This document shows, one piece after another, positions 4,396 through 62,315 of a DNA stretch of 64,000 nucleotides. Each line of letters starts with the position of its first letter. Within the stretch, counting starts at the first letter, position 1. The DNA is from Mytilus trossulus (lineage: Eukaryota). Location: the NCBI RefSeq assembly GCF_036588685.1, contig NC_086376.1, positions 22,568,001-22,632,000 on the forward strand. Direction: 5' to 3'. Below the pieces are notes generated by a model. The model searched no databases and had not been told where the DNA came from. It saw only the letters and a list, made by a program, of their open reading frames with translations. Both the position numbers and the translations under genes were made by a program.

Positions 4396-5536
4396 TCACC
4401 AAGCAGAAAACCCTCTCTGTATTTTACAAGATGAATAAAAAGCTGAATTCGTTGTAGGTTTAAATGATGACGACGTACAGTATGTTGCTGGAGCAATAAA
4501 TGATTGTCCTGATAACGATTGTGAGACTGGAAAGAGTGAATCGCTTCCATATGACTGCATGGCTGCAGGAAATTGCGTTCTTGTCATTCCGAATGTTGAC
4601 ACAGGAGACAAAGAAATTTGATGTGAGAAGTGAGGTTTTGTATGCATAAGGGATCCTTTCATTGAGTATGGATATAATACAGTTGGCGATGATGTCATAG
4701 GTACATATTCATTATTATGTCGTGCGTAGAATTGATTAGATGAGCCATCGACAGTTTTTACAGAACTTTTTCTTGCTCTTCGTCTTGCATTTCGACGCCT
4801 GAAGTCTCCTTTTGCAAAATCCATGCAATACATGCTAAGTGAATTGACCAGTAGTTGCCTTTGCCGTTATCAGACCGGCCACTTTTCACGAAACATTCGT
4901 TGAGAGAAAGATTATGTCGTATGCTGTTCCTCCATGCTTTTTCTTTGTTATTGTAGAAGGGGAAATTATCCATTATGTATTGATATATATCATTTAGTAA
5001 TAGTTTCTTACTCGGTTTACTCAGTATTGCCATCGAAATCATAGCGATGTACGAGTGTGATGGCTTCTTTTCGGTGGTACTTGAAGACAAGATATCCTTG
5101 ATTGATCTGTCTAACGATATCTGAACCTACAAAAATAAACAGAAATGTTATAGAAAATTACCAAATACAAAATATATAAGAAATAAAAAGAAAGGGATAA
5201 ATATTAAAAATAACGATGATATTAATGAGTATCATTATCAATATTGACATTTTGCAACAAATAAACTTGAGCCGTTGATTTGCTTATTGTTCAATTCATA
5301 AACTTCTTTTTTTTAATATAGTAAAAGATTCCTCAAACAATTTAAAGATATTTTCATTTAAAAATATAACATACCTGTGCAATAGATTCATCACTGTCAC
5401 TGTGGTTACTTTCGCTTTCACTTGTATATAGTGACGGTGTCCACAATTCATCCCCATCGCTGGAGAAAGAATCTCTTTTTACTCTTTCTGTTCGTCCACT
5501 GTTCAAGAAGTGAATGCTTAAATGTGAATTATTCAT
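4396..5536 (-). pseudogene. FoxQ2: FoxQ2-class forkhead gene copy 1, frameshifted (exon 1 5536-5375, exon 2 5126-4396)
   Basis: Exon 2 is 731 nt against 729 in intact copies. At 4823-4825 the sense strand reads ATTGCATGGAT instead of ATTGAGGAT (net +2), shifting frame after ..WSIHLACI, with a stop at 4758-4760. This is the most divergent C-terminus in the array. Confidence 0.85.
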
Positions 5537-5579
5537 GACTCTAAAATTTATTGTAGCAATCGTGTTGAGAAAAGATTAC

Positions 5580-5676
5580 AGAATGATTTATACTGTTGGC
5601 GTTACAGAATATATACCAGCAAACCTGTTATTTTTCACAGTTTTGAGTCACGTGAACTTATTCAAATGGCATTGTT
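5580..5676 (-). promoter_or_regulatory. Core promoter of copy 1, repeated upstream of all 13 copies
   Basis: On the minus strand, TATATATT starts at 5615, 31 nt before the A of an Inr-consensus TCATTC (5584). Also GTCACGTGA E-box (5647-5655) overlapping TGAGTCA, and CATTGT Sox-like site (5670-5675). The same arrangement and spacing occur in every copy. Confidence 0.7.
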
Positions 5677-12194: not shown

Positions 12195-13373
12195 TCACCA
12201 AGAAGAAAACTCTTTCTGTATCTGACAAGATGAATAAAAAACATTAGAGTTCGGTTTGAATGATGACGATGTACTGTATGTGCATGGAGCAATACATGAT
12301 TGTTCTCCTGATAACGATTGCGAAACCGGAAATAGTGAATCGCTTCCAAATGATTGCACGGTTGCTGGAAATTGCATTCTTGTTATTCCGAATGTAGATA
12401 CAGGAGACTGAGTTATTGGATGTGAGTAGTGAGGTTTTGTGTGCATCGGTGATCCTTTCATTGAGTATGGACAGAATCCAGTTGGTGATGATGTCATAGG
12501 TACATATCCATTATTATGTCGTGCGTAGAATTGATTAGATGAACCATCGACAGTTTTTACAGAACTTTTTCTTGCTCTTCGCCTTGCATTTTGACGCCTG
12601 AAGTCTCCTTTTGAAAAATCCTCAATACATGCTAAGTGAACAGACCAATAGTTGCCTTTGCCGTTATCAGACGGGCCATTTTTCACGAAACATTCGTTGA
12701 GAGAAAGATTATGTCGTATGCTGTTCCTCCATGCTTTTTCTTTGTTATTGTAGAAGGGAAAATTATCCATTATGTATTGATATATATCAATCAGTACTAA
12801 TTTCTTGCTCGGTTTACTCAGTATTGCCATTGAAATCATAGCGATGTACGAGTGTGATGGCTTCTTGTTGGTGTTACTTGTACATAATATATTCTTAATT
12901 GATCTGTCTAACGATAACTGAACCTACAAAAATAAACAGAAATGTTATAGAAAATTACCAAATACAAAATATATAAGAAATAAAAAGAAAGGGATAAATA
13001 TTTAGAAATAAAGATGATATGTATTAATATCATTATCAATATTGACATTTTGCAACAAAAAAAAGCTGTTGGTTTGCTTATTATTGAATACGTGTATAAA
13101 TGTAAATATATTTCGCCCTTTATTTAAGATAATAAATATCTCGTTTCCTTTAATATAGCATAAGATTCCTCTACCAATTTAAAGACATTTTCATTTAAAA
13201 ATACAACATACCTGTGCAATAGATTCATCACTGTCACTGTGGTTACTTTCACTTTCACTTGTACATAGAGACGGTGTCCACAACTCATCCCCATCGCTTG
13301 AGAAAGAATCTCGTTTGACTCTTTCTGTATCTGTGTTGTTCAAATAATAAATGCTTAAATGTGAATTATTCAT
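12195..13373 (-). CDS. FoxQ2: FoxQ2-class forkhead transcription factor copy 2, intact, 296 aa (exon 1 13373-13212, exon 2 12923-12195)
   Basis: Forkhead domain [41 protein letters not shown] with the FoxQ2-type wing 2. Donor CAG|GTATGT, acceptor TTTTTGTAG|GTT, phase 0, no stops. Confidence 0.88.
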
Positions 13374-17694: not shown

Positions 17695-18879
17695 TCACCA
17701 AGCAGAAAACTCTTTCTGTATCTGACAAGATGAATAAAAAACATTAGAGCTCGGTTTGAATGATGGCAATGTACAGTATGTGGATGGTACAATGAATGAG
17801 TGCCCTCCCGATAAGGATTGAGAAACTGGAAACAGTGGATCGCTTCCGAATGACTGCATGACTGCTGGCAATTGCGTTCTTGTCGTTCCGAATGTAGATA
17901 TAGGAGACTGAGTATTTTGATGTGAGTTGTAAGGTTTAGTATGCATAAAGGATCCTTTCATTGAGTATGGATGGAATCCAATTGGAGATGATGTCATTGG
18001 TACATATCCGTTATTACTACGTGTGTAGAAATGATTAGATGAGCCATCGACAGTTTTTACAGAACTTTTTCTTGCTGTTCGCCTTGCATTTCGACGCCTG
18101 AAGTCTCCTTTTGCAAAATCCTCAATACATGCTAAGTGAACAGACCAATAGTTGCCTATGCCGTTATCAGACCGGCCATTTTTCACGAAACATTCGTTGA
18201 GAGAAAGATTATGCCGTATGCTGTTCCTCCATGCTTTTTCTTTGTTATTGTAGAAGGGAAAATTATCCATTATGTATTGATTTATATTTCATTCAGCAAT
18301 AGTTTCTTGCTCGGTTTACTCAGTATTGCCATTGAAATCATAGCGATGTACGAGTGAGAAGGTTTCTTGGCGGTGGTACTTGAAGACAAGATATCCTTGA
18401 TTGATCTGTCTAACGATATCTGAACCTACGAAAATAAACAGAAATGTTATAGAAAATAAACCAAACAAAAAATTTAGAAATAAAAAGAGAGGGATCGATA
18501 TTTAAAAATAATGATGATATTAATTAGTATCATTATCAATATTGACACTTTGCAACATATAAAATGTAATTATTGGTTTGCATATAGTTGAAAACCTGTA
18601 TATGATATATACATAAACTTCTTCGCCCTTTATTTATTCTAATTTTTTATCAAAGAAATAAATATCTTTTCTTTTAAAATAGCATCAAAAAAATCCTCTA
18701 CCAATTTACCAACATACCTGTGCAATAGATTCATCACTGTCACTGTGGCTACTTTCACTTTCACTTGTGCAAAGAGACGGTGTCCAAACTTCATCACCTT
18801 CGCTTGAGAAAGAATCTCTTTTGACTCTTTCTGTTCGTCCCCTGTTCAAATAATAGATGCTTAAATGTGTATTATTCAT
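17695..18879 (-). pseudogene. FoxQ2: FoxQ2-class copy 3, frameshift plus premature stop (exon 1 18879-18718, exon 2 18425-17695)
   Basis: Exon 2 is 731 nt. The sense strand reads AAT GAA ATA TAA (stop at 18282-18284) instead of AAT GAT ATA TAT. It also has GKG>GIG in the forkhead wing. Confidence 0.85.
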
Positions 18880-20803: not shown

Positions 20804-21986
20804 TCACCAAGCAGAAAACTCTTTCTGTATCTGACAAGATGAACAACAAACATTAGAGCTCGGTTTGAATGATGGCAATGTACAGTATGTGGATGGTACA
20901 ATGAATGAGTGCCCTCCTGATAAGGATTGAGAAACTGGAAACAGTGGATCGCTTCCGAATGACTGCATGACTGCTGGCAATTGCGTTCTTGTCGTTCCGA
21001 ATGTAGATATAGGAGACTGAGTATTTTGATGTGAGTTGTAAGGTTTTGTATGCATAAGAGATCCTTTCATTGAGTATGGATAAAATCCAATTGGAGATGA
21101 TGTCATTGGTACATATCCATTATTACTACGTGTGTAGAATTGATTGGATGAGCCCTCGACGGTTTTTACAGAACTTTTTCTTGCTCTTCGCCTTGCATTT
21201 CGACGCCTGAAGTCTCCTTTTGCAAAATCCTCAATACATGCTAAGTGAACAGACCAATAGTTGCCTTTGCCGTTATCAGACCGGCCATTTTTCACGAAAC
21301 ATTCGTTGAGAGAAAGATTATGCCGTATGCTGTTCCTCCATGCTTTTTCTTTGTTATTGTAGAAGGGAAAATTATCCATTATGTATTGATATATATCAAT
21401 CAGCAATAGTTTCTTGCTCGGTTTACTCAGTATTGCCATTGAAATCATAGCAATGTACGAGTGCGAAGGTTTCTTGGCGGTGGTACTTGAAGACAAGATA
21501 TCCTAGATTGATCTGTCTAACGATATCTGAACCTACGAAAATAAACAGAAATGTTATAGAAAACAAACCAAACAAAAAATTTAGAAATAAAAAGAGAGGG
21601 ATCGATATTTAAAAATAATGATGATATTAATTAGTATCATTATCAATATTGACACTTTGCAACATATAAAATGTAATTATTGGTTTGCATATAGTTGAAA
21701 ACCTGTATATGATATATACATAAACTTCTTAGCCCTTTATTTATTCTAATTTTTTATCAAAGAAATAAATATCTTTTCTTTTAAAATAGCATCAAAAAAA
21801 TCCTCTACCAATTTACCAACATACCTGTGCAATAGATTCATCACTGTCACTGTGGCTACTTTCACTTTCACTTGTGCAAAGAGACGGTGTCCAAACTTCA
21901 TCACCTTCGCTTGAGAAAGAATCTCTTTTGACTCTTTCTGTATCTCCCCTGTTCGAATAATAGATGCTTAAATGTGTATTATTCAT
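20804..21986 (-). pseudogene. FoxQ2: FoxQ2-class copy 4, nonsense mutation before the forkhead domain (exon 1 21986-21825, exon 2 21532-20804)
   Basis: Codon 10 of exon 2 is TAG (21505-21503) where all other copies have AAG (Lys). The rest of the exon is open. Confidence 0.8.
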
Positions 21987-41673: not shown

Positions 41674-42388
41674 GATTCCTAAATTTATTGGAACAATCTT
41701 GTTGAGAGAAGATTACAGAATGACTTATACTGTTTGCGTTACAGAATATATACCAGACAAACCTGTTATTTTTCACAGTTCTAAGTCACGTGATCTGATT
41801 CAAATGGCATTGTTTCTAGATTAACGGGTCATAATGTTGAATAAAAATATGTTGACAATACAAATTGTATTCATAGTTATAAAAAATATTTCGTTGGAAA
41901 ATATAGATATTGATAATACCAACATTAACGTCATGTAGAGCACAAAACGAATCCAAAATAAAGGCAACAGTAGTATACCGCGATAAAGATAGAGAAAAAA
42001 ACAAATCCGGGTTGCAAACTCAAACTGAGGGAAATGCATCATATATAAGAGAACTATAACACAACAGAACCACAACATCTTAATTTTGAATGTTTTAGAA
42101 ATGCCCTAGATTTATTGGTACAAAAAAGAACTCACTGAGGCTTAAGCTTTGAAACTTCAAAACTACCTTTCGTCTACGTGAGACACATAAGTTAAAATCG
42201 AATCAAACCAGTTAAACCCCAAATTAATATCGAAAATGAGGAGTATTATAAGCAAACTTTTCGAATAGTTTTGTCAAAATTGTGTGTGTGTTTGTAAGTT
42301 TTTTTGGGGGGTATACACAACTTAATGACACTGTGTATGTGTCATTGAGTATATCTTCCACTCTGAATAAAATTTCAATTGATAGATA

Positions 42389-42640
42389 GAGGTCTCGGTG
42401 GCCAAGTTGTCTAAGTGGTTACTACGTTAATCACAATTCAGTCAACATTAAAGTTGCTGGTTCGAAACTCGCCCGTATGTGTTAACTCGACTCAAATCTT
42501 AATTGACTAGGATTGTCAGTTTCCAAACGAAGATCTGTAGTTTTCCCTTGTTCAATGGCACCCTCCAGCAATAAAATATGGTCGCCAAGAAATAGCCCAA
42601 AAGTGGCGCTTAAAAATGGCACTTAAACACCAACAATAAT
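42389..42640 (+). mobile_element. tRNA-derived SINE, full-length form (also about 45981-46232, 49594-49845, 53186-53437, 63029-63277)
   Basis: A-box TGGCCAAGT(G/T)G, B-box GGTTCGAAAC, and a body ending AAAATGGCRCTWAAACACCAACAAT, resembling mollusc SINE tails. Confidence 0.65.
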
Positions 42641-44085: not shown

Positions 44086-45268
44086 TCACCAAGCAGAAAA
44101 CTCTTTCTGTATCTGACAAGATGAATAAAAAACATTAGAGCTCGGTTTGAATGATGACAATGTACAGTATGTGGATGGTACAATGAATGAGTGCCCTCCT
44201 GATAAGGATTGAGAAACTGGAAACTGTGGATCGCTTCCGAATGACTGCATGACTGCTGGCAATTGCGTTCTTGTCGTTCCGAATGTAGATATAGGAGACT
44301 GAGTATTTTGATGTGAGTTGTAAGGTTTTGTATGCATAAAGGATCCTTTCATTGAGTATGGATGAAATCCAATTGGAGATGATGTCATTGGTACATATCC
44401 GTTATTACTACGTGTGTAGAATTGATTAGATGAGCCATCGACAGTTTTTGCAGAACTTTTTCTTGCTCTTCGCCTTGCATTTCGACGCCTGAAGTCTCCT
44501 TTTGCAAAATCCTCAATACTTGCTAAGTGAACAGACCAATAGTTGCCTTTACCGTTATCAGACCGGCCATTTTTCACGAAACATTCGTTGAGAGAAAGAT
44601 TATGCCGTATGCTGTTCCTCCATGCTTTTTCTTTGTTATTGTAGAAGGGAAAGTTATCCATTATGTATTGATATATATCATTGAGTAATAGTTTTTTGCT
44701 CGGTTTACTCAGTATTGCCATTGAAATCATAGCGATGTACGAGTGCGAAGGTTTCTTGTCGGTGGTACATGAAGACAAGATATCCTTGATTGATCTGTCT
44801 AACGATAATTGAACCTACGAAAATAAACAGAAATGTTATAAAAAATAAACCAAACAAAAATTTAGAAATAAAAAGTGAGGGATCGATATTTAAAAATAAT
44901 GATGATATTAATTAGTATCATTATCAATATTGACACTTTGCAACAAATAAAATGTAATTATTGTTTTGCATATAGTTGAAAACCTGTATATGATATATAC
45001 ATAAACTTCTTCGCCTTTTAATACTGCTAATTTTTTTATCAAAGAAATAAATATCTTTTCTTTTAAAAAAGCATAAAAAAAATCCTCTACCAATTTACCA
45101 ACATACCTGTGCAATAGATTCATCACTGTCACTGTGGCTACTTTCACTTTCACTTGTGCAAAGAGACGGTGTCCAAACTTCATCACCTTCGCTTGAGAAA
45201 GAATCTCTTTTGACTCTATCTGTATCTCCCCTGTTCAAATAATAGATGCTTAATTGTGTATTATTCAT
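44086..45268 (-). CDS. FoxQ2: FoxQ2-class copy 8, intact (exon 1 45268-45107, exon 2 44814-44086)
   Basis: Complete two-exon ORF, canonical splice sites, forkhead domain. Confidence 0.9.
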
Positions 45269-47688
45269 GATTCCTAAAATAGTTAGAACAATCTTGTTGA
45301 GAGAAAATTACAGAATGACTTCTACTGTTTGCGTTACAGAATATATACCAGACAAACCTGTTATTTTTCACAGTTCTGAGTCACGTGATCTGATTCAAAT
45401 GGCATTGTTACTAAATTAACGGGTCATATTGTTGAATAAAAATATGTTGACAGTACAAATTGTATTCATAGTTATAAAAAATATTTTGTTCGAAAATATA
45501 GATATTGATAATACCAAAATTAACGTCAAGTAGAGCACAAAACGAATCAAAAATAAAGGCAACAGTAGTATACCGCGATAAAGATAGAGAAAAAAACAAA
45601 TCCGGGTTGCAAACTCAAACTGAGGTAAATGCATCATATATAAGAGAACTATGACACAACAGAACCACAGCATCTTAATCTTGAATGTTTTAGAAATGCC
45701 CTAGATTTATTGGTACAAAAAAGAACTCACTGAGGCTTAAGCTTTGAAACTTCAAAACTACCTTTCGTCTACATGAGACACATAAGTTAAAATCGAATCA
45801 AACCAGTTAAACCCCCAATTAATATCGAAGTTGAGGAGTATTATAAGCAAACTTTTCGAATAGTTTCGTCAAAATTGTGTGTGTGTTTGTAAGGTTTTTT
45901 TGGGGGTATACACAACTTTATGACACTGTGTATGTGTCATTGAGTATAACCTTCCACTCTGAATAAAATTTCAAATGATAGAGGTCTCGGTGGCCAAGTG
46001 GTCTAAGTGGTTACTTCTTTAATCACAATTCTGTCAACATTAAAGTTGCTGGTTCGAAACTCGCTCGTATGTGTTAACTCGACTCAAATCTTAATTGACT
46101 AGGATTGTCAGTTTCCAAACGAAGATCTGTAGTTTTCTCTTGGTTCAATGGCACCCTCCAGCAATAAAATATGGTCGCCAAGAAATAGCCCAAAAGTCGC
46201 TTTTAAAAATGGCGCTAAAACACCAACAATTAATCCATCTTAAGCTTTGTTTTTACATAACCTTTTTTTTTAAATATGTGCAGTGAATAGAAAGTTTTAT
46301 TTTTTCAACTGCGCATTAAAAGAAAATTCATATGCATTTAGTGTGAAGCTATTAGAATTTTTGCAATTTTATCTATAATTGTAATAGAGTACAATAGACT
46401 CGATTAACTTATATGTGCCCTTGAATATTGCGCACATAAAACTTATACAGTAAAATGAATCATAATAGAAAGCAGTATTCATAGATAAAACAGTAAACGT
46501 TCAATGAATTAATAGGTATAAATATACGTTATACTTTTTCTTGAAAACCATCAAACAATACGGCATATTGTGTATCATTTAACACTGAAACAATGAACAT
46601 AAAAGATGTGTTATGATTGCCTATGATACAAGTTTCAACCAAAGACCAACCGACGTAAAGGGAAAAATAATATAACTCTATGGCCTTCATGCTAATTTTT
46701 AAATTATTGTTCAATACTTCTCGTCAACATATTGTTGAAGGTGTACCAAAGTAATGTAGTACAAATCAACACCAATTTGTGGCTTTTAAATGTCACTTGT
46801 CTTTCTCAAAATGTCAGCAGGTGTCATATATATAGACTTTATTATTATTATGACTTACATTTTGTTATAAGGCACATAAGATAAAAAAATATGAGTGCGT
46901 TATCAATCTAGATTTGTTACGACACCACTTGTATAAAATGTTGTCGTCATTAACAGATTTGACTGTGGACCTAGTTGTCAAACGACACGTTCGTGCACAG
47001 CCTGCAGAAACCCCTGAGGATCAAAACGAAAATTTTAAACACTAGAATACTGTTTCGAATAATATTACAAACAACTTAATTTTTTTTTTATAAACAAAAT
47101 ATATTTTTTGCACTTCTCTATTAGTTTGCCTATTTGTGTAAAGATTGGTTTGGCCATGAAGCTCAAGAAGCATTACAGTCCCTCCCAAATTATAAACGAG
47201 CTAAGAACCAAAAGATGCTAAAGTATTAACATAACTCATAAGTCGAAAACAAAATACTAATGCAACCAAAAAACAACCAAAAGACGCTGTAAAAATACCA
47301 GCAACAAAACTTCAAACGTTTTAAATTCTTTTTTTATTAATTGTATATACAGTTGTAGGAACGGTGTAATGTTCCAGAGTATCTGTCATGATAACAGCCA
47401 AATGTCAATATTCCTTATTGACTCTAACCTCAAGAATTATATACATAAACTGTTACTATAGTATAATCCCTCAAATACAATTGAGTCTTTTCATGATGCC
47501 GTTTTGCAGGTATCATTTAAAACAAAATAGTCCTTAGTTCGTCAAAATAATTATGTAAGTCAACGCTGCTGACGTATACAAATTGTCTAGTATCTTTACT
47601 TCGTTCGGCCATACTGCATGATAATTTTCAATTATTCAAAACCAGCAAAATTTTAAACTCACACTTGGTATTGTGAGATAAATTAAAA

Positions 47689-48878
47689 TCACCAAGCAGA
47701 AAACTCTTTCTGTATCTGACAAGATGAATAAAAAACATTAGAACTCGGTTTGAATGATGACAATGTACAGTATGTGGATGGTACAATGAATGAGTGCCCT
47801 CCTGATAAGGATTGAGAAACTGGAAACAGTGGATCGCTTCCGAATGACTGCATGACTGCTGGCAATTGCGTTCTTGTCGTTCCGAATGTAGATATAGGAG
47901 ACTGAGTATTTTGATGTGAGTTGTAAGGTTTTGTATGCATAAAGGATCCTTTCATTGAGTATGGATGAAATCCAATTGGCGATGATGTCATTGGTACATA
48001 TCCGTTATTACTTCGTGCGTAGAATTGATTAGATAAGCCATCGACTGTTTTTGCAGAACTTTTTCTTGCTCTTCGCCTTGCATTTCGACGCCTGAAGTCT
48101 CCTTTTGCAAAATCCTCAATACATGCTAAGTGAACAGACCAATAGTTGCCTTTCCCGTTATTAGACCGGCCATTTTTCACGAAACATTCGTTGAGAGAAA
48201 GATTATGCCGTATGCTGTTCCTCCATGCTTTTTCCTTGTTATTGTAGAGAGGAAAATTATCCATTATGTATTGATATATATCATTGAGTAATAGTTTCTT
48301 GCTCGGTTTACTCAGAATTGCCATTGAAATCATAGCGATGTACGACTGTGATGGCTTCTTGTTGGTGTTACTTGAAGACAAGATATCCTTGATTGATCTG
48401 TCTAACGATATCTGAACCTACGAAAATAAACAGAAATGTTATAGAAAATAAACCAAACAAAAAATTTAGAAATAAAAAGAGAGGGATCGATATTTAAAAA
48501 TAATGATGATATTAATTAGTATCATTATGAATATTGACACTTTGTAACAAATAAAATGTAATTGTTGGTTTGCATATTATTGAAAACATGTATCTGATAT
48601 ATACATGAAATTCTTCGCCCTTATATATTCTTATTTTCTATCAAAGAAATAAATATCTTTTCTTTTTAAATAGCATTAAAAAAAAATAATATTCCTCTAC
48701 CAATTTACCAACATACCTGTGCAATAGATTCATCACTGTCACTGTGGCTACTTTCACTTTCACTTGTACAAAGAGACGGTGTCCAAACTTCATCACCTTT
48801 GCTTGAGAAAGAATCTCGTTTGACTCTTTCTGTATTTCCCCTGTTCAAATAATAACTGCTTAAATGTGAATTATTCAT
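47689..48878 (-). CDS. FoxQ2: FoxQ2-class copy 9, intact (exon 1 48878-48717, exon 2 48417-47689)
   Basis: Complete two-exon ORF, nearly identical to copy 7 at an offset of 7204. Confidence 0.9.
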
Positions 48879-51290
48879 GATTCCTAAATTTATTGGAACA
48901 ATCTTGTTGAGAGAAGATTACAGAATGACTTATACTGTTTGCGTTACAGAATATATACCAGACAAACCTGTTATTTTTCACAGTTCTAAGTCACGTGATC
49001 TGATTCAAATGGCATTGTTTCTAGATTAACGGGTCATAATGTTGAATAAAAATATGTTGACAATACAAATTGTATTCATAGTTATAAAAAATATTTCGTT
49101 GGAAAATATAGATATTGATAATACCAACATTAACGTCATGTAGAGCACAAAACGAATCCAAAATAAAGGCAACAGTAGTATACCGCGATAAAGATAGAGA
49201 AAAAAACAAATCCGGGTTGCAAACTCAAACTGAGGGAAATGCATCATATATAAGAGAACTATAACACAACAGAACCACAACATCTTAATTTTGAATGTTT
49301 TAGAAATGCCCTAGATTTATTGGTACAAAAAAGAACTCACTGAGGCTTAAGCTTTGAAACTTCAAAACTACCTTTCGTCTACGTGAGACACATAAGTTAA
49401 AATCGAATCAAACCAGTTAAACCCCAAATTAATATCGAAAATGAGGAGTATTATAAGCAAACTTTTCGAATAGTTTTGTCAAAATTGTGTGTGTGTTTGT
49501 AAGTTTTTTTGGGGGGTATACACAACTTAATGACACTGTGTATGTGTCATTGAGTACATCTTCCACTCTGAATAAAATTTCAATTGATAGATAGAGGTCT
49601 CGGTGGCCAAGTTGTCTAAGTGGTTACTACGTTAATCACAATTCAGTCAACATTAAAGTTGCTGGTTCGAAACTCGCTCGTATGTGTTAACTCGACTCAA
49701 ATCTTAATTGACTAGGATTGTCAGTTTCCAAACGAAGATCTGTAGTTTTCCCTTGTTCAATGGCACCCTCCAGCAATAAAATATGGTCGCCAAGAAATAG
49801 CCCAAAAGTGGCGCTTAAAAATAGCACTTAACCACCAACAATTATTCCATCTGAAGCTTTGTTTTTGCATAACCTTTTTTTTTTAAATCTGTGCAGTTAA
49901 TAGAAAGTTTTATTATTTCAACTGCGCATTAAAAGAAAATTCATGTGCATTTTGTGTGAAGCTATTCGAATTTTTACAATTTTATCTATAATTGTAATAG
50001 AGTACAATAGACTCGATTAACTTATATGTGCCCTTGAATATTGCGCACATAAAACTTATAAGGTAAAATGAATCATATTCATAGATACAACAGTAAACGT
50101 TCAATGAATTAATAGGTATAAATATACGTTATACTTTTTCTTCAAAACCGTCAAACAATACGTCATATTGTGTATCATTTAACACTGAAACAATGAACAT
50201 AAAAGATGTGTTATGATTGCCTATGATACAAGTCTCAACCAAAGACCAACGACGTAAAGGGAAAAATAATATAACTCTATGGCCTTCATGCTAATTTTTA
50301 AATTATTGTTCAATACTTCTCGTCAATATATTGTTGAAGGTGTACCAAAGTAATGAAGTACAAATCAACACCAATTTGTGGCTTTTAAATGTCACTTGTC
50401 TTTCTCAAAATGTCAGCAGGTGTCAATTATATATATATAAAGACTTTCTTATTATTTTGCCTTACATTTGCTATAAGGCACATAAGATTGAAAATATGAG
50501 TGTGTTATCAATCTAGATTTGTTACGACACCACTTGTATAAAATGTTGTCGTCATTAACATATTTGACTGTGGACCTAGTTGTCAAACGACACGTTCGTA
50601 CACAGCCTGCAGAAATCCTGAGGATCAAAACGAATATGTTAAACACTAGAATACTGTTTCGAATAATATTACAAACAACTTAATTTTTTTTTCATAAAAA
50701 AAATATATTTTTTGCACTTCTCTATTAGTTTGCCTATTTGTCTAAAGATTGGTTTGGCCATGAAGCTCAAGAAGCATTACAGTCCCTCCCAAATTATAAA
50801 CGAGCTAAGAACCAAAAGATGCTAAAGTATTAACATAACTCATAAGTCGAAAACAAAATAATAATGCAACCAAAAAACAACCAAAAGACGCTGTAAAAAA
50901 AAAGCAACAAAACTTCAAATGTTATAAAAAAAAAATTATTAATTGTATATACAGTTGTAGGAACGGTGTAATGTGCCAGAGTATCTGTCATTATAACAGC
51001 CAAATGTCAATATTCCTTATTGACTCCAAACCCAAGAATTATATACATAAACTGTTACTATAGTCTAATCCCTCAAATACAATTGAGTCTTTTCACGATG
51101 CCGTTTTGCAGGTATAAATTAAAACAAAATAGTCCTTAGTTCGTCAAAACAATTATGTAAGTCAACGCTGCTGACGAATACAAATTGTCTAGTATCTTTA
51201 CTTAGTTCGGCCATACTCCATGATAATTTTCAATTATTCAAAACCAGCAAAAATTTAAACTCACACTTGGTATTGTGAGATAAATTAAAA

Positions 51291-52473
51291 TCACCAAGCA
51301 GAAAACTCTTTCTGTATCTGACAAGATGAATAAAAAACATTAGAGCTCGGTTTGAATGATGACAATGTACAGTATGTGGATGGTACAATGAATGAGTGCC
51401 CTCCTGATAAGGATTGAGAAACTGGAAACTGTGGATCGCTTCCGAATGACTGCATGACTGCTGGCAATTGCGTTCTTGTCGTTCCGAATGTAGATATAGG
51501 AGACTGAGTATTTTGATGTGAGTTGTAAGGTTTTGTATGCATAAAGGATCCTTTCATTGAGTATGGATGAAATCCAATTGGAGATGATGTCATTGGTACA
51601 TATCCGTTATTACTACGTGTGTAGAATTGATTAGATGAGCCATCGACAGTTTTTGCAGAACTTTTTCTTGCTCTTCGCCTTGCATTTCGACGCCTGAAGT
51701 CTCCTTTTGCAAAATCCTCAATACTTGCTAAGTGAACAGACCAATAGTTGCCTTTACCGTTATCAGACCGGCCATTTTTCACGAAACATTCGTTGAGAGA
51801 AAGATTATGCCGTATGCTGTTCCTCCATGCTTTTTCTTTGTTATTGTAGAAGGGAAAGTTATCCATTATGTATTGATATATATCATTGAGTAATAGTTTT
51901 TTGCTCGGTTTACTCAGTATTGCCATTGAAATCATAGCGATGTACGAGTGCGAAGGTTTCTTGTCGGTGGTACATGAAGACAAGATATCCTTGATTGATC
52001 TGTCTAACGATAATTGAACCTACGAAAATAAACAGAAATGTTATAGAAAATAAACCAAACAAAAATTTAGAAATAAAAAGTGAGGGATCGATATTTAAAA
52101 ATAATGATGATATTAATTAGTATCATTACCAATATTGACACTTTGCAACAAATAAAATGTAATTATTGTTTTGCATATAGTTGAAAACCTGTATATGATA
52201 TATACATAAACTTCTTCGCCTTTTAATACTGCTAATTTTTTTATCAAAGAAATAAATATCTTTTCTTTTAAAATAGCATAAAAAAAATCCTCTACCAATT
52301 TACCAACATACCTGTGCAATAGATTCATCACTGTCACTGTGGCTACTTTCACTTTCACTTGTGCAAAGAGACGGTGTCCAAACTTCATCACCTTCGCTTG
52401 AGAAAGAATCTCTTTTGACTCTATCTGTATCTCCCCTGTTCAAATAATAGATGCTTAATTGTGTATTATTCAT
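51291..52473 (-). CDS. FoxQ2: FoxQ2-class copy 10, intact (exon 1 52473-52312, exon 2 52019-51291)
   Basis: Complete two-exon ORF. The exon 2 protein is identical to copy 8 (offset 7205). Confidence 0.9.
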
Positions 52474-54892
52474 GATTCCTAAAATAGTTAGAACAATCTT
52501 GTTGAGAGAAAATTACAGAATGACTTCTACTGTTTGCGTTACAGAATATATACCAGACAAACCTGTTATTTTTCACAGTTCTGAGTCACGTGATCTGATT
52601 CAAATGGCATTGTTACTAAATTAACGGGTCATATTGTTGAATAAAAATATGTTGACAGTACAAATTGTATTCATAGTTATAAAAAATATTTTGTTCGAAA
52701 ATATAGATATTGATAATACCAAAATTAACGTCAAGTAGAGCACAAAACGAATCAAAAATAAAGGCAACAGTAGTATACCGCGATAAAGATAGAGAAAAAA
52801 ACAAATCCGGGTTGCAAACTCAAACTGAGGTAAATGCATCATATATAAGAGAACTATGACACAACAGAACCACAGCATCTTAATCTTGAATGTTTTAGAA
52901 ATGCCCTAGATTTATTGGTACAAAAAAGAACTCACTGAGGCTTAAGCTTTGAAACTTCAAAACTACCTTTCGTCTACATGAGACACATAAGTTAAAATCG
53001 AATCAAACCAGTTAAACCCCCAATTAATATCGAAGTTGAGGAGTATTATAAGCAAACTTTTCGAATAGTTTTGTCAAAATTGTGTGTGTGTTTGTAAGGT
53101 TTTTTTGGGGGTATACACAACTTTATGACACTGTGTATGTGTCATTGAGTATAACCTTCCACTCTGAATAAAATTTCAAATGATAGAGGTCTCGGTGGCC
53201 AAGTGGTCTAAGTGGTTACTTCTTTAATCACAATTCTGTCAACATTAAAGTTGCTGGTTCGAAACTCGCTCGTATGTGTTAACTCGACTCAAATCTTAAT
53301 TGACTAGGATTGTCAGTTTCCAAACGAAGATCTGTAGTTTTCTCTTGGTTCAATGGCACCCTCCAGCAATAAAATATGGTCGCCAAGAAATAGCCCAAAA
53401 GTCGCTTTTAAAAATGGCGCTAAAACACCAACAATTAATCCATCTTAAGCTTTGTTTTTACATAACCTTTTTTTTTAAATATGTGCAGTGAATAGAAAGT
53501 TTTATTTTTTCAACTGCGCATTAAAAGAAAATTCATATGCATTTAGTGTGAAGCTATTAGAATTTTTGCAATTTTATCTATAATTGTAATAGAGTACAAT
53601 AGACTCGATTAACTTATATGTGCCCTTGAATATTGCGCACATAAAACTTATACAGTAAAATGAATCATAATAGAAAGCAGTATTCATAGATAAAACAGTA
53701 AACGTTCAATGAATTAATAGGTATAAATATACGTTATACTTTTTCTTGAAAACCATCAAACAATACGGCATATTGTGTATCATTTAACACTGAAACAATG
53801 AACATAAAAGATGTGTTATGATTGCCTATGATACAAGTTTCAACCAAAGACCAACCGACGTAAAGGGAAAAATAATATAACTCTATGGCCTTCATGCTAA
53901 TTTTTAAATTATTGTTCAATACTTCTCGTCAACATATTGTTGAAGGTGTACCAAAGTAATGTAGTACAAATCAACACCAATTTGTGGCTTTTAAATGTCA
54001 CTTGTCTTTCTCAAAATGTCAGCAGGTGTCATATATATAGACTTTATTATTATTATGACTTACATTTTGTTATAAGGCACATAAGATTAAAAATATGAGT
54101 GCGTTATCAATCTAGATTTGTTACGACACCACTTGTATAAAATGTTGTCGTCATTAACAGATTTGACTGTGGACCTAGTTGTCAAACGACACCTTCGTGC
54201 ACAGCCTGCAGAAACCCCTGAGGATCAAAACGAAAATTTTAAACACTAGAATACTGTTTCGAATAATATTACAAACAACTTAATTTTTTTTTTATAAACA
54301 AAATATATTTTTTGCACTTCTCTATTAGTTTGCCTATTTGTCTAAAGATTGGTTTGGCCATGAAGCTCAAGAAGCATTACAGTCCCTCCCAAATTATAAA
54401 CGAGCTAAGAACCAAAAGATGCTAAAGTATTAACATAACTCATAAGTCGAAAACAAAATACTAATGCAACCAAAAAACAACCAAAAGACGCTGTAAAAAA
54501 ACCAGCAACAAAACTTCAAACGTTTTAAATTCTTTTTTTATTAATTGTATATACAGTTGTAGGAACGGTGTAATGTTCCAGAGTATCTGTCATGATAACA
54601 GCCAAATGTCAATATTCCTTATTGACTCTAACCTCAAGAATTATATACATAAACTGTTACTATAGTATAATCCCTCAAATACAATTGAGTCTTTTCATGA
54701 TGCCGTTTTGCAGGTATCATTTAAAACAAAATAGTCCTTAGTTCGTCAAAATAATTATGTAAGTCAACGCTGCTGACGTATACAAATTGTCTAGTATCTT
54801 TACTTCGTTCGGCCATACTGCATGATAATTTTCAATTATTCAAAACCAGCAAAATTTTAAACTCACACTTGGTATTGTGAGATAAATTAAAA

Positions 54893-56074
54893 TCACCAAG
54901 CAGAAAACTCTTTCTGTATCTGACAAGATGAATAAAAAACATTAGAACTCGGTTTGAATGATGACAATGTACAGTATGTGGATGGTACAATGAATGAGTG
55001 CCCTCCTGATAAGGATTGAGAAACTGGAAACAGTGGATCGCTTCCGAATGACTGCATGACTGCTGGCAATTGCGTTCTTGTCGTTCCGAATGTAGATATA
55101 GGAGACTGAGTATTTTGATGTGAGTTGTAAGGTTTTGTATGCATAAAGGATCCTTTCATTGAGTATGGATGAAATCCAATTGGAGATGATGTCATTGGTA
55201 CATATCCGTTATTACTACGTGTGTAGAATTGATTAGATGAGCCATCGACGGTTTTTACAGAACTTTTTCTTGCTCTTCGCCTTGCATTTCGACGCCTGAA
55301 GTCTCCTTTTGCAAAATCCTCAATACATGCTAAGTGAACAGACCAATAGTTGCCTTTGCCGTTATCAGACCGGCCATTTTTCACGAAACATTCGTTGAGA
55401 GAAAGATTATGCCGTATGCTGTTCCTCCATGCTTTTTCTTTGTTATTGTAGAAGGGAAAATTATCCATTATGTATTGATATATATCATTGAGTAATAGTT
55501 TCTTGCTCGGTTTATTCAGTATTGCCATTGAAATCATAGCGATGTACGAGTGCGAAGGTTTCTTTTCGGTGGTACTTGAAGACAAGATATCCTTGACTGA
55601 TCTGTCTAACGATATCTGAACCTACGAAAATAAACAGAAATGTTATAGAAAATAAACCAAACAAACAATTTAGACATAAAAAGAGAGGGATCGATATTTA
55701 AAAATAATGATGATATTAATTAGTATCATTATCAATATTGACACTTTGCAACAAATAAAATGTAATTATTGGTGTGCATATAGTTGAAAACATGTATATG
55801 ATATATACATAAACTTCTTCGCCCTTTATTTATGCTAATTTTTTATCAAAGAAATAAATATCTTTTCTTTTAAAATAGCATAAAAAAATCCTCTACCAAT
55901 TTACCAACATACCTGTGCAATAGATTCATCACTGTCACTGTGGCTACTTTCACTTTCACTTGTGCAAAGAGACGGTGTCCAAACGTCATCACCTTCGCTT
56001 GAGAAAGAATCTCTTTTGACTCTATCTGTATCTCCCCTGTTCAAATAATAGATGCTTAAATGTGTATTATTCAT
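54893..56074 (-). CDS. FoxQ2: FoxQ2-class copy 11, intact (exon 1 56074-55913, exon 2 55621-54893)
   Basis: Complete two-exon ORF, canonical splice sites, forkhead domain. Confidence 0.9.
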
Positions 56075-58024
56075 GATTCCTAAAATTATTAGAACAATCT
56101 TGTTGAGAGAAAATTACAGAATGACTTCTACTGTTTGCGTTACAGAATATATACCAGACAAACCTGTTATTTTTCACAGTTCTGAGTCACGTGATCTGAT
56201 TCAAATGGCATTGTTTCTAAATTAACGGGTCATATTGTTGAATAAAAATATGTTGACAATACAAATTGTATTCATAGTTATAAAAAATATATTGTTCGAG
56301 AATATAGATATTGATAATACCAAAATTAACGTCATGAAGAGCACAAAACGAATCAAAAATAAAGGCAACAGTGGTATACCGCGATAAAGATAGAGAAAAA
56401 TAATAATCCGGGTTGCAAACTCAAACGGAGGGAAACGCATCATATATAAGAGAACTATGACACAACAGAACCACAACATCTTAATCTTGAATGTTTTAGA
56501 AATACCCTAGATTTATTGGTACAAAAAAGAACTCACTGCGGCTTAAGCTTTGAAACTTCAAATTAATATCGAAGTTGAGGAGTATTATAAGCAAACTTTT
56601 CGAATAGTTTTGTCAAAATTGTGTGTGTGTTTGTAAGGTTGGTTTTGTTTTTTGTTTTTTTTTTTTGGGGGGGGGGGGGGGTAAACACAACTTTATGACA
56701 CTGTGTATGTGTCATTGAGTATAACCTTCCACTCTGAATAAAATTTTAGTTGATAGATAGCGGTCTCGGTGGCCAAGTGGTCTAAGTGGTTACTACTTTA
56801 ATCACAATTCAGTCAACATTAAAGTTGCTGGTTCGAAACTCGGCATATTGTGTATTATTTAACACTGAAACAATGAACATAAAAGATGCGATATGATTGC
56901 CTATGATACAAGTCTCAACCAAAGACCAAACTACGTAAAGGGAAAAGAACTATATTATAACTCTATGGCCTTCATGCTTATTTTTAAATTATTGTTCAAT
57001 ACTACTCGTCAACATATTGTTGAAGGTGTACCAAAGTAATGTAGTACAAATCAACACCAATTTGTGGCTTTTAAATGTCACTTGTCTTTCTCAAAATGTC
57101 AGCAGGTGTCATATATAGACTTTATTATTATTATGACTTACATTTTGTTATAAGTAACATGATTAAAGATATGAGTGTGTTATCAAGCTAGATTTGTTAC
57201 GACACCACTAGTACTTGTATAAAATGTTGTCGTCATTAACAGATTTGACTGTAGACCTAGTTGTCAAACGACACGTTCGTACACAGCCTGCAGAAACCCT
57301 GAGTATCAAAACAAATATGTTAAACACTAGAATACTGTTTCGAATAATATTACAAACAACTTAATTTTTTTTTATAAACAAAATATATTTTTTGCACTTC
57401 TCTATTAGTTTGCCTATTTGTCTAAAGATTGGTTTGGCCATGAAGCTCAAGAAGCATTACAGTCGCTTTCAAATTATAAACGTGCTAAGTGAAGTTAATG
57501 TAATCAAGATCAGACACAGTGCATGGACATCTACAAAGAACCAAAAGATGCTAAAGTATTAACATAACTCATAAGTCGAAAACAAAATACTAATGCCATG
57601 GGTTAAAACAACCAAAAGACGCTGTAAAAAAATCAGCAACAAAACTTCAAATGTTAGAAATTCTTTTTTTAATTAATTGTATATACAGTTGTAGGAACGG
57701 TGTAATGTTCCAGAGTATCTGTCATGATAACAGCCAAATGTCAATATTCCTTATTGACTCCAAACTCAAGAATTATATACATAAACTGTTACTATAGTCT
57801 AATCCCTCAAATACAATTGAGTCTTTTCACAATGCCGTTTTGCAGGTATCATTTAAAACAAAATAGTCCTTAGTTCGTCGAAACAATTATGTAAGTCAAC
57901 GCTGCTGACGTATACAAATTGTCTAGTATCTTTACTTGGCTCGGCCATACTGCATGATAATTTTCAATTATTCAAAACCAGCAAAATTTTAAACTCACAC
58001 TTGGTATTGTGAGATAAATTAAAA

Positions 58025-59207
58025 TCACCAAGCAGAAAACTCTTTCTGTATCTGACAAGATGAATAAAAAACATTAGAGCTCGGTTTGAATGATGACAAT
58101 GTACAGTATGTGGATGGTACAATGAATGAGTGCCCTCCTGATAAGGATTGAGAAACTGGAAACAGTGGATCGCTTCCGAATGACTGCATGACTGCTGGCA
58201 ATTGCGTTCTTGTCGTTCCGAATGTAGATATAGGAGACTGAGTATTTTGATGTGAGTTGTAAGGTTTTGTATGCATAAGGGATCCTTTCATTGAGTATGG
58301 ATGAAATCCAATTGGAGATGATGTCATTGGTACATATCCGTTATTACTACGTGTGTAGAATTGATTGGATGAGCCATCGACGGTTTTTACAGAACTTTTT
58401 CTTGCTCTTCGCCTTGCATTTCGACGCCTGAAGTCTCCTTTTGCAAAATCCTCAATACATGCTAAGTGAACAGACCAATAGTTGCCTTTGCCGTTATCAG
58501 ACCGGCCATTTTTCACGAAACATTCGTTGAGAGAAAGATTATGACGTATGCTGTTCCTCCATGCTTTTTCTTTGTTATTGTAGAAGGGAAAATTATCCAT
58601 TATGTATTGATATATATCATTCAGCAATTTTTTCTTGCTCGGTTTACTCAGTATTGCCATTGAAATCATAGCGATGTACGAGTGCGAAGGTTTCTTGTCG
58701 GTGGTACTTGAAGACAAGATATCCTTGATTGATCTGTCTAACGATATCTGAACCTACGAAAATAAACAGAAATGTTATAGAAAACAAACCAAACAAAAAA
58801 TTTAGAAATAAAAAGAGAGGGATCGATATTTAAAAATAATGATGATATTAATTAGTATCATTATCAATATTGAGACTTTGCAACAAATAAAATGTAATTA
58901 TTGGTTTGCATATAGTTGAAAACCTGTATATGATATATACATAAACTTCTTCGCCCTTTATTTATGCTAATTTTTTATCAAAGAAATAAATATCTTTTCT
59001 TTTAAAATAGCATAAAAAAAATCCTCTACCAATTTACCAACATACCTGTGCAATAGATTCATCACTGTCACTGTGGCTACTTTCACTTTCACTTGTGCAA
59101 AGAGACGGTGTCCAAACTTCATCACCTTCGCTTGAGAAAGAATCTCTTTTGACTCTTTCTGTATCTCCCCTGTTTAAATAATAGATGCTTAAATGTGTAT
59201 TATTCAT
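58025..59207 (-). CDS. FoxQ2: FoxQ2-class copy 12, intact (exon 1 59207-59046, exon 2 58753-58025)
   Basis: Complete two-exon ORF, canonical splice sites, forkhead domain. Confidence 0.9.
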
Positions 59208-61132
59208 GATTCCTAAAATTATTGGAACAATCTTGTTGAGAGAAAATTACAGAATGACTTATACTGTTTGCGTTACAGAATATATACCAGACAAACCTGT
59301 TATTTTTCACAGTTCTGAGTCACGTGATCTGATTCAAATGGCATTGTTTCTAAATTAACGGGTCATACTGTTGAATAAAAATATATTGACAATACAAATT
59401 GTATTCATAGTTATAAAAAATATTTTGTTCGAAAATATAGATATTGATAATACCAAAATTAACGTCATGAAGAGCACAAAACTAATCAAAAATAAAGGCA
59501 ACAGTATACCGCGATAAAGATAGAGAAAAAAAACCAAATCCGGGTTTCAAACTCAAACTGAGGGAAACACATCATATATAAGAGAACTATGACACAACAG
59601 AACCACAACATCTTAATCTTGAATGTTTTAGAAATGCCCTAGATTTATTGGTACCAAAAAAAACTCACTGAGGCTTATGCTTTGAAACGTCAAAACTACC
59701 TTAGGAGGAGTATTATAAGCAAACTTTTGAATAGTTTTGTCAAAATTGTGTGTGTGTTTGTAAGGTTTTGTTTGTTGTTTTTTTTGGGGGGGGGGGGAAA
59801 CACAACTTTATGACACTGTGTATGTGTCATTGAGTATAACCTTCCACTCTGAATAAAATTTCAATTGATAGATAGAGGTCTCGGTGGCCATGTGGTCTAA
59901 GTGGTTACTACTTTAATCACAATTCAGTCAACATTAAAGTTGCTGGTTCGAAACTCGGCATATTGTGTTTCATTTAACACTAAAACAATGAACATAAAAG
60001 ATGTGATATGATTGCCTATGATACAAGTCTCAACCAAAGACCAAACGACGTAAAGGGAAAAAAACTATATTATAACTATATGGCCTTCATGCTAATTTTT
60101 AAATTATTGTTCAATACTACTCGTCAACATATTGTTGAAGGTCTACCAAAGTAATGTAGTACAAATCAACACCAATTTGTGGCTTTTAAATGTCACTTGT
60201 CTTTCTCAAAATGTCAGCAGGTGTCATATATAGACTTTATTATTATTATGACTTACATTTTGTTATAAGTAACATGATTAAAGATATGAGTGTGTTATCA
60301 ATCTAGATTTGTTACGACACCACTTGTATAAAATGTTGTCGTCATTAACAGATTTGACTGTAGACCTAGTTGTCAAAAGACACGTTCGTACACAGCCTGT
60401 AGAAACCCTGAGGATCAAAACAAATATGTTAAACACTAGAATACTGTTTCGAATAATATTACAAACAACTTAATTTTTTTTCATAAACAAAATATATTTT
60501 TTGCACTTCTCTATTAGTTTGCCTATTTGTCTAAAGATTGGTTTGGCCATGAAACTCAAGAAGCATTACAGTCGCTTTCAAATTATAAACGTGCTTAGTG
60601 AAGTTATTGTAATCAAGATCAGACACAGTGCATGGACATCTACAAAGAACCAAAAGATGCTAAAGTATTAACATAACTCATAAGTCGAAAACAAAATACT
60701 AATGCCATGGGTAAAAACAACCAAAAGACGCTGTAAAAAAATCAGCAACAAAACTTCAAATGTTATAAATTCTTTTTTTATTAATTGTATATACAGTTGT
60801 AGGAACGGTGTAATGTTCCAGAGTATCTGTCATGATAACAGCCAAATGTCAATATTCCTTATTGACTCCAAACTCAAGAATTATATACATAAACTGTTAC
60901 TATAGTCTAATCCCTCAAATACAATTGAGTCTTTTCACGATGCCGTTTTGCAAGTATCATTTAAAACAAAATAGTCCTTAGTTCGTCAAAACAATTTTGT
61001 AAGTCAACGCTGCTGACGTATACAAATTGTCTAGTATCTTTACTTAGTTCGGCCATACTGCATGATAATTTTCAATTATTCAAAACCAGCAAAATTTTAA
61101 ACTCACACTTGGTATTGTGAGATTAATTAAAA

Positions 61133-62315
61133 TCACCAAGCAGAAAACTCTTTCTGTATCTGACAAGATGAATAAAAAACATTAGAGCTCGGTTTGAATG
61201 ATGACAATGTACAGTATGTGGATGGTACAATGAATGGGTGCCCTCCTGATAAGGATTGAGAAACTGGAAACAGTGGATCGCTTCCGAATGACTGCATGAC
61301 TGCTGGCAATTGCGTTCTTGTCGTTCCGAATGTAGATATAGGAGACTGAGTATTTTGATGTGAGTTGTAAGGTTTTGTATGCATAAGGGATCCTTTCATT
61401 GAGTATGGATGAAATCCAATTGGAGATGATGTCATTGGTACATATCCGTTATTACTACGTGTGTAGAATTGATTGGATGAGCCATCGACGGTTTTTACAG
61501 AACTTTTTCTTGCTCTTCGCCTTGCATTTCGACGCCTATAGTCTCCTTTTGCAAAATCCTCAATACATGCTAAGTGAACAGACCAATAGTTGCCTTTGCC
61601 GTTATCAGACCGGCCATTTTTCACGAAACATTCGTTGAGAGAAAGATTATGCCGTATGCTGTTCCTCCATGCTTTTTCTTTGTTATTGTAGAAGGGAAAA
61701 TTATCCATTATGTATTGATATATATCATTCAGCAATAGTTTCTTGCTCGGTTTACTCAGTATTGCCATTGAAATCATAGCGATGTACGAGTGCGAAGGTT
61801 TCTTGTCGGTGGTACTTGAAGACAAGATATCCTTGACTGATCTGTCTAACGATATCTGAACCTACGAAAATAAACAGAAATGTTATAGAAAACAAACCAA
61901 ACAAAAAATTTAGAAATAAAAAGAGAGGGATCGATATTTAAAAATAATGATGATATTAATTAGTATCATTATCGATATTGACACTTTGCAACAAATAAAA
62001 TGTAATTATTGGTTTGCATATAGTTGAAAACCTGTATATGATATATACATAAACTTCTTCGCCCTTTATTTATGCTATTTTTTTATCAAAGAAATAAATA
62101 TCTTTTCTTTTAAAATAGCATAAAAAAAATCCTCTACCAATTTACCAACATACCTGTGCAATAGATTCATCACTGTCACTGTGGCTACTTTCACTTTCAC
62201 TTGTGCAAAGAGACGGTGTCCAAACTTCATCACCTTCGCTTGAGAAAGAATCTCTTTTGACTCTTTCTGTATCTCCCCTGTTCAAATAATAGATGCTTAA
62301 ATGTGTATTATTCAT
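61133..62315 (-). CDS. FoxQ2: FoxQ2-class copy 13, intact (exon 1 62315-62154, exon 2 61861-61133)
   Basis: Complete two-exon ORF, canonical splice sites, forkhead domain. Confidence 0.9.

Follow-up and report, generated by a model that had tools for sequence, protein, structure and literature searches.

We analyzed a 64,000-nucleotide stretch of the Mytilus trossulus genome (RefSeq assembly GCF_036588685.1, contig NC_086376.1, here C4, positions 22,568,001 to 22,632,000), hereafter called the window, which holds a tandem array of forkhead transcription factor genes of the FoxQ2 type. Performing tblastn and blastn searches with one copy as the query, we find both exons of a two-exon forkhead gene 13 times in the window. 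All of them lie on the minus strand in a head-to-tail arrangement, and their stop-to-stop spacing is 3.1 to 11.2 kb. Ten of the 13 copies are intact, while copies 1 and 3 are frameshifted and copy 4 carries a premature stop. There are no runs of N in the window, and an Rfam scan of its whole length returned no matches.

A preliminary description of this DNA, made from the letters alone, had counted 13 copies, 10 of them intact, and had given their coordinates, two-exon structure and common orientation. The searches, the reading frames and the exon mapping agree with it on each of these points.

Thirteen co-oriented genes and their annotation

The copies are listed below, with coordinates running from the stop codon to the ATG; thus, 4396 is the stop of copy 1 and 62315 the ATG of copy 13.

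4396..5536, minus strand: copy 1, FoxQ2I pseudogene of the older lineage, +2 frameshift near exon 2 codon 100
12195..13373, minus strand: copy 2, intact, older lineage, 84% amino acid identity to copy 8 over exon 2
17695..18879, minus strand: copy 3, pseudogene of the young lineage, +2 frameshift near exon 2 codon 46
20804..21986, minus strand: copy 4, pseudogene of the young lineage, TAG at exon 2 codon 10
24125..25307, minus strand: copy 5, intact, identical to RefSeq model P0124; variant TATA box TATATTT, TGACTCA site lost
35294..36454, minus strand: copy 6, intact, older lineage, identical to RefSeq model P0193
40485..41673, minus strand: copy 7, intact, B-type 3.6-kb unit, identical to RefSeq model P0126
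44086..45268, minus strand: copy 8, intact, A-type 3.6-kb unit, identical to RefSeq model P0123; exon 1 at 45107-45268, intron at 44815-45106, exon 2 at 44086-44814
47689..48878, minus strand: copy 9, intact, B-type unit, identical to RefSeq model P0125
51291..52473, minus strand: copy 10, intact, A-type unit, coding sequence identical to that of copy 8
54893..56074, minus strand: copy 11, intact, identical to RefSeq model P0001
58025..59207, minus strand: copy 12, intact, 3.1-kb unit, identical to RefSeq model P0121
61133..62315, minus strand: copy 13, intact, 3.1-kb unit, identical to RefSeq model P0122

The gene structure is uniform across the array. In every copy, exon 1 is 162 nt long (54 codons from the ATG, phase 0), the intron is 248-299 nt long with a GTATGT donor and a pyrimidine-rich acceptor ending in TAG, and exon 2 measures 729 nt (242 codons). 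The intact copies encode proteins of 296 amino acids, and the forkhead domain matches Pfam Forkhead PF00250 over profile positions 1-87 of 88 (E = 5.2e-33). The predicted mRNA is about 1.3 kb, with its start predicted ~48 nt ahead of the ATG and its polyA site ~370 nt past the stop.

The best protein matches of the array are from Mytilus. We compared the copies with the RefSeq annotation exon by exon, taking exon 1 as the prefix and exon 2 as the suffix of each protein; the protein searches reported below used exon 2. Nine intact copies (5 to 13) match 296-amino-acid M. trossulus RefSeq models exactly, and P0123, the product of copies 8 and 10, has two RefSeq accessions.

A FoxQ2 cluster and its young M. 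trossulus clade

Searching the whole 1.30-Gb assembly, we find all close relatives of the array on C4 between 22,443,000 and 22,652,400. Mapping both exons in the flanks of the window outlines a cluster of ~210 kb with ~35 loci on both strands. Exon 2 is open and could be aligned over more than 200 residues at 19 of the ~35 loci, a few more divergent members are open too, and ~12 loci are fragments or pseudogenes. The minus-strand series extends past both ends of the window, to a single older copy at 22,565,607 (left) and a founder-like paralog at 22,636,657 (right). Orthologs of the founder-like paralog, one to one and at least 90% identical, occur in five Mytilus species.

The young copies show a different distribution. 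A tree built on exon-2-equivalent proteins of five Mytilus species groups the eight distinct intact young copies into a clade of M. trossulus sequences only (support 100/100), nested in a 100/98 group in whose other lineages M. edulis and M. galloprovincialis have a single gene each. The 90% protein cluster that contains the young copies (P0001) consists of M. trossulus RefSeq models only. The ten-unit young clade as a whole (identity of at least 94%) has no protein from another species at 90% identity or more. This absence is provisional, since other assemblies may easily have collapsed near-identical tandem copies or left them without annotation.

For the founder-like paralog, public read-assembly contigs bear on splicing. 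Its 297-amino-acid products come from contigs only 1141 and 1524 bp long, into which the unspliced gene would not fit. Other public contigs hold a 63-amino-acid product that reads through the donor and a 242-amino-acid product that is exon 2 alone. The direct evidence of splicing at the homologous junction is that of the founder-like paralog, a more distant member of the same cluster.

Judging by sequence, the genes are of the FoxQ2 class and, within it, of the subfamily FoxQ2I (also called Fox-Q2c). To place the cluster, we built a forkhead-domain tree of 91 columns that also takes in 14 further forkhead loci from this genome and relatives belonging to other phyla. In it, the cluster sits within a 100/100 clade on a long stem (branch length 0.67). 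The same clade holds Saccoglossus NP_001161546.1 (P0148, curated as 'forkhead box Q2-like'; Sko_FoxQ2I-2), cnidarian sequences, the Fox-Q2c proteins of oyster, Mya and Dreissena, and two further mussel loci, L017 and L018. The 12 remaining mussel Fox loci were placed outside the FoxQ2 clade. This phylogeny against the FoxQ2 subtypes had been proposed with the preliminary description; it supports the class, but the 91 columns neither separate the three FoxQ2 subfamilies nor settle the monophyly of FoxQ2I.

The forkhead domain also carries KPxHSY in place of KPPYSY and WRNS in place of WQNS, and its wing-1 loop is short, GR(S/A)xNGKG in place of VPRxxxxPGKG. We take KPxHSY, WRNS and the short wing loop to be FoxQ2-defining, with the supplementary alignment of an Owenia study alongside (PMC9539403). 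In a full-length alignment of relatives, the array proteins keep all blocks common to bivalves through hemichordates. These are the EH1-like motif near the N-terminus, ESIAxVxLSLD across the exon junction, the forkhead domain itself, RRRxARRRARK, GYVPMTSS and a W at the end. All ten open copies have an intact recognition helix. The EH1-like motif is degenerate and varies between array copies (LSIYYL, LSIHFL, LSINFL, ISSYYL); the same site reads FSID(Y/F)L in the founder-like paralog and in other bivalves. The array proteins would be sequence-specific DNA-binding factors and probably Groucho-linked repressors, as proposed for FoxQ2.

Accession matches and identity to named members bear out the FoxQ2 name that the preliminary description had given, as does the tree. 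The oyster protein P0032 is identical in sequence to Cgi_FoxQ2I of Gattoni et al. 2025, and P0148 is their Sko_FoxQ2I-2 (PMC12828049). Ten homologues share accessions with Fox-Q2c entries in a part of Table S6 of Nicolini et al. 2025, and the same part of that table labels the congeneric orthologs 'Forkhead domain Q2 (410809)', that is, CDD cd20035 / 410809, FH_FOXQ2-like (PMC12530298).

Other sources of a class name were set aside. The automatic NCBI names (fkh-2-like, unc-130-like, I3-like, L1, D2-like) and the protein-atlas name 'Forkhead box protein L1' were rejected as class evidence because they contradict one another and are at odds with the tree. A PDB search gave the FOXC2, FOXL2 and FOXA domains as the best solved relatives; to our knowledge no FoxQ2 structure exists, and therefore these matches are uninformative on the Fox class.

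We think it probable that this real, functional-looking array is the youngest, M. trossulus-specific part of the ~210-kb FoxQ2I cluster.

Elsewhere in the cluster, the ~22 loci outside the window (22,443,000-22,568,000 and 22,632,000-22,652,400; L001-L016) show 45-82% protein identity to copy 8. This outer cluster includes a near-identical, divergent trio at 22,443,069, 22,451,058 and 22,459,567, and several pseudogenes. Judged from their forkhead sequences, L017 (C4:66,474,886-66,475,806) is a single-copy gene of the FoxQ2II type and L018 (C1:46,542,349-46,543,335) a single-copy gene of the FoxQ2III type. By sequence, the M. trossulus genome thus has genes of each of the three FoxQ2 subfamilies, with amplification confined to FoxQ2I.

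Unit structure, regulatory signals and constraint

Comparing the units with each other, we find nine regular ones: four measure 3.6 kb, the other five 3.1-3.3 kb, and they share 94-99.8% identity. The shorter units lack ~500 bp of spacer relative to the 3.6-kb units. Older irregular units of 5.2-11.2 kb break the regular series. The genes of the older copies 1, 2 and 6 have ~84% nucleotide identity to the young copies, and the proteins of the two lineages differ at ~16% of the sequence. The following segments are duplicated within the window.

39,996..56,562: higher-order repeat, 39,996-49,366 against 47,203-56,562, 98.6% over 9.4 kb; duplication of a two-unit (B-A) block of 7.2 kb
The two A units: 99.75% over 3.6 kb, with identical coding sequences
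17,200-23,809 against 54,408-61,036: two short 3.1-kb units, 96.8% over 6.6 kb, a segmental copy
11,023-15,805 against 34,126-38,898: 94.7% over 4.8 kb, a segmental copy of an older unit

These alignments show that units of 3.1-3.6 kb were multiplied, again and again, by unequal crossing-over and by segmental duplication. The 99.75% identity of two units implies very recent turnover; the near-identical units agree with the recent amplification claimed in the preliminary description. Identity along A versus B units is uneven, ranging from 86% to 99%. In exon 2, copies 7 and 9 differ from copies 8 and 10 by a synonymous divergence (dS) of ~0.19 in the forkhead region and of ~0.04 in the C-terminal part. 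Seen in the same copy pairs, this mosaic suggests gene conversion or recombination among the copies, or gene conversion from a more distant paralog. Synonymous sites that tell A-type from B-type copies lie at exon 2 codons 21-23, 34, 56, 61 and 88.

We asked how far such similarity could be an artefact, with haplotypes laid in tandem, for example, and a true array much smaller than the assembled one. The 98.6% over 9.4 kb and the 99.75% between the A units are both within the allelic divergence of a very heterozygous bivalve. However, two alleles of one to three loci could not give rise to the array's 12 distinct coding sequences, its three inactivating lesions, each of another kind, and its two lengths of unit. 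Moreover, the window is gap-free, and no other contig of the assembly carries further copies of the units. An artefact could account for the A-B/A-B duplication at most, and at least 11 copies would remain. A copy number inflated by assembly error is, in our judgment, very improbable.

The regulatory signals of the copies were compared in the upstream and downstream flanks. Examples of the two flanks are given here.

45269..45400, minus strand: proximal promoter of copy 8, standing for those of the other copies; its function is presumed from the sequence
47203..47688, minus strand: conserved 3' flank of copy 9, a probable 3' untranslated region, with the polyadenylation (polyA) hexamer ~351 nt past the stop

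The 130 nt upstream of the ATG are nearly invariant among the young copies. They contain CACGTGACTCAG at -119, an E-box overlapping a TGACTCA site, then TATATAT at -79; 31 nt past this TATA box comes the A (-48) of an initiator-like TCATTC. The TATA box, the initiator and a AACTGTGAA...CAACAG element are found in most of the exon-1-bearing paralogs of the cluster, down to 64-72% protein identity. The founder-like paralog keeps the TATA box and the AACTGTGAA element and has TTATTC at the initiator position. From its sequence, the promoter is TATA-driven, and it is presumably active. The upstream alignment, in which copy 5 has its variant TATA box, fits the earlier claim that each copy has its own TATA-type promoter.

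Downstream of the gene, ten of the 13 copies, from both the old and the young lineage, have a polyA hexamer between +348 and +356 relative to the stop; copies 5, 8 and 10 lack the canonical hexamer. In the 3' flanks of copies 8 and 10, it is mutated (at about 43,735 and 50,940). If the polyA signal is used, these two copies may be processed differently from the others.

Fitting a codon model in IQ-TREE on the maximum-likelihood tree, we estimated omega (the dN/dS ratio) for three parts of the coding sequence.

Forkhead domain: omega 0.20; omega = 1 rejected, 2dlnL = 22.1, p = 2.6e-6
Exon 1: omega 0.32; p = 0.007 against omega = 1
C-terminal part: omega 0.56; p = 0.02 against omega = 1

By the pairwise Nei-Gojobori method, omega came to 0.2-0.5 over the full coding sequence, and mostly to 0.05-0.3 in the forkhead domain. 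The variants of the forkhead domain within the young clade are 14 synonymous and 9 non-synonymous ones. The forkhead domain is under purifying selection; the preliminary description had named a dN/dS near 1 in this domain as evidence against itself, and the value found is 0.20.

A non-coding block of ~200 bp also recurs once per unit, ~1.4 kb upstream of each ATG (example at 46682..46876). The window holds 14 of these blocks, which start at the following positions.

1484 (to 1690), 8921, 15095, 19752, 22859, 32243, 38188
43076, 46682, 50281, 53887, 56967, 60082, 63455

The block is 79-92% identical between pairs, compared with 70-74% for the surrounding spacer, and its majority identity is 0.90-0.96 against 0.7-0.8 around it. 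On the plus strand it reads TATATAAATAG and then TCATCA. This block may act as an enhancer, or as a second promoter in antisense orientation. We did not find it at the outer paralogs of the cluster. A transposon was also considered for the conserved intergenic block and rejected, because an 848-bp block is confined to the array, save for a 50-60-bp piece that is repeated genome-wide.

A repeat of another kind lies in the 6-kb spacer between copies 5 and 6.

28958..30897, plus strand: dispersed transposon-like repeat of ~1.94 kb

Many copies of this repeat occur at 96-98% identity on other chromosomes, and therefore it looks like a recently active mobile element. The 199-amino-acid open reading frame inside it (29046-29645) had no Pfam match.

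A proposed dosage role, possible drift and comparison with known systems

FoxQ2 is a core anterior and apical patterning factor. The closest guides to a role of the array are an oyster ortholog and a set of annelid paralogs. The Crassostrea gigas FoxQ2I protein (XP_011435457.2 / EKC20378.1) is an ortholog that has FSIDxL, ESIAxVLLSLD, the forkhead domain, GYVPMTSS and the terminal W in common with the array; it differs in being a single gene and in having a canonical EH1-like motif. Seudre et al. 2022 (PMC9539403) report oyster foxQ2-1 to be a maternal gene with expression in early cleavage; its forkhead domain spans residues 76-168, like that of P0032. Oyster Cg06159, with NP_001161546.1 as its best match, is highest in oocytes and declines afterward (Zhang et al. 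2014, PMC4232546). In Owenia, foxQ2-1, -4, -5, -6, -9 and -10 are at their highest 4 hours after fertilization, at the animal pole (PMC9539403), and the expanded foxQ2 genes are among those upregulated at zygotic genome activation (PMC12550047). Our literature searches found no forkhead data on genome activation in Mytilus, and nothing relevant on the number of the oyster gene.

Unequal crossing-over and segmental duplication multiplied complete genes, each with its promoter, intron and 3' flank. The many near-identical promoters would raise the transcript output in oocytes or in cleavage-to-blastula embryos. By analogy with the oyster ortholog and the related Owenia paralogs, expression in the early embryo or the oocyte with a dosage benefit is a tentative proposal, to which we give a little less than an even chance. 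In a stronger version, the amplification would be a selected dosage device, in which at least ten near-identical FoxQ2I genes fire together from compact TATA-plus-initiator promoters at the animal pole from cleavage to blastula, and the copy number varies between individuals and species. We hold this version to be unlikely. If true, the foxQ2 expansion of Owenia would be a convergent case, as would, in logic, the vertebrate multicopy early-embryo genes, and the copy-number differences between M. trossulus and M. edulis or M. galloprovincialis could affect the early development of hybrids.

Several observations weigh against a functional dosage array. Many of them would be expected if unequal crossing-over in a duplication-prone genome drove a neutral birth-and-death process, in which the young copies are redundant, drifting and being lost. 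Three of the 13 copies are already broken, and the wider cluster has ~12 fragments and pseudogenes. Outside the forkhead domain, an omega of 0.32 in exon 1 and of 0.56 in the C-terminal part fits relaxed constraint, as does the degenerate and variable EH1-like motif. Even within the forkhead domain, the singletons are 6 non-synonymous versus 5 synonymous. The 90% protein cluster of the young copies contains no public read-assembly sequence, while that of the founder-like paralog does. To these are added the loss of the canonical polyA hexamer in the identical A-type copies 8 and 10, and the suggested gene conversion, because of which the tree assumption behind the omega values is violated. The two oyster papers also conflict over the number of the FoxQ2I gene, CGI_10003726 (PMC9539403 Table S5) or 10006159 (PMC4232546 Table 4). 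Probably, one of the two tables has two rows swapped; despite the conflict, both papers make the FoxQ2I-type gene the maternal one.

Against neutral turnover stands the omega of 0.20 in the forkhead domain, where omega = 1 is rejected. The promoter, donor, acceptor and polyA signal are kept even between copies at a dS of ~0.2, and none of the ten open copies has lost the intact recognition helix. We rate neutral birth-and-death as somewhat unlikely, though it is the alternative to which we give the most room, and we keep the young, functional-looking FoxQ2I sub-array as the preferred reading.

The array is a very recent and datable amplification, with units up to 99.75% identical, a species-specific clade and intact regulatory signals. 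It bears on the question of why FoxQ2 has been amplified repeatedly in spiralians. With its tractable embryos and natural hybrid zones, Mytilus allows one to ask directly about dosage, sub-functionalisation and neutral turnover.

The preliminary description had also seen in the array a macrosatellite of the DUX4/D4Z4 architecture. D4Z4 is a uniform human macrosatellite of GC-rich 3.3-kb units, each with the intronless homeobox gene DUX4, and a polyA signal is gained only at the last unit. DUX4 acts in cleavage-stage genome activation. By the same logic, the mussel array would be epigenetically controlled and copy-number variable, encoding a master burst regulator of zygotic genome activation. 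The likeness consists in kilobase-sized tandem units that each hold a short transcription factor gene: the 3.1-3.6-kb units each have one with a TATA promoter, the units are up to 99.75% identical, and the related Owenia foxQ2 paralogs rise at genome activation. However, the mussel array is non-uniform, with units of 3.1-11.2 kb, two lineages ~16% apart in protein, and a transposon insertion. Its genes are forkhead genes with no homology to DUX, each copy has an intron, and a canonical polyA hexamer at ~+350 is found in 10 of the 13 copies. The D4Z4-type trait of an intronless gene productive only with a distal polyA signal is thus absent from the mussel array.

The DUX4-like reading is an analogy, and one D4Z4-defining feature fails on testing. 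Only about nine units are regular; the macrosatellite architecture was overstated in the earlier claim, considering the older irregular units, the transposon insertion, the intron and the polyA signals. By analogy alone, a DUX4-like, dosage-amplified burst at early cleavage is plausible; we consider it improbable that the array is a full macrosatellite of that kind.

Another comparison is the foxQ2 expansion of Owenia fusiformis, which is lineage-specific, genomically linked and has the same forkhead signature as in the mussel (Seudre et al. 2022, PMC9539403). It differs in being independent and in another phylum, with 11 genes that are mostly intronless, and tandem units at 95-100% identity are not described for it (PMC9539403). 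FoxQ2I is 'often in high copy number' in spiralians, and was not recovered from gastropods or nemerteans by Gattoni et al. 2025, Commun Biol (PMC12828049). Unlike that study, our searches turned up close relatives in Patella, Haliotis and Lineus that carry the same signature in the forkhead domain. Four consecutive Patella caerulea genes on one contig, SNE40_005055-005058 (P0048, P0049, P0063, P0070), are FoxQ2I-like, and this quartet may be another independent tandem expansion, in a gastropod.

The Fox-Q2c expansion in Mytilus spp., already published by Nicolini et al. 2025, Mol Ecol (PMC12530298), concerns the same gene family and the same cluster as the M. trossulus array. In the part of its Table S6 that we matched, there are 16 Fox-Q2c genes for M. 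edulis, 9 for M. galloprovincialis, 11 for M. coruscus and 2 for M. californianus, many of them with consecutive accessions on one scaffold (PMC12530298). That work gives gene counts and a tree without the array anatomy, and M. trossulus rows are absent from this part of the table (PMC12530298). The family, the class and the Mytilus expansion were thus known, and the genes are annotated in RefSeq. What is new is the anatomy of the array with its higher-order repeat, its place in a cluster of ~35 loci, the young clade found in M. trossulus only, the compact and conserved promoter, and the test of selection. On present evidence, the locus extends the published expansion and is not a new type of system.

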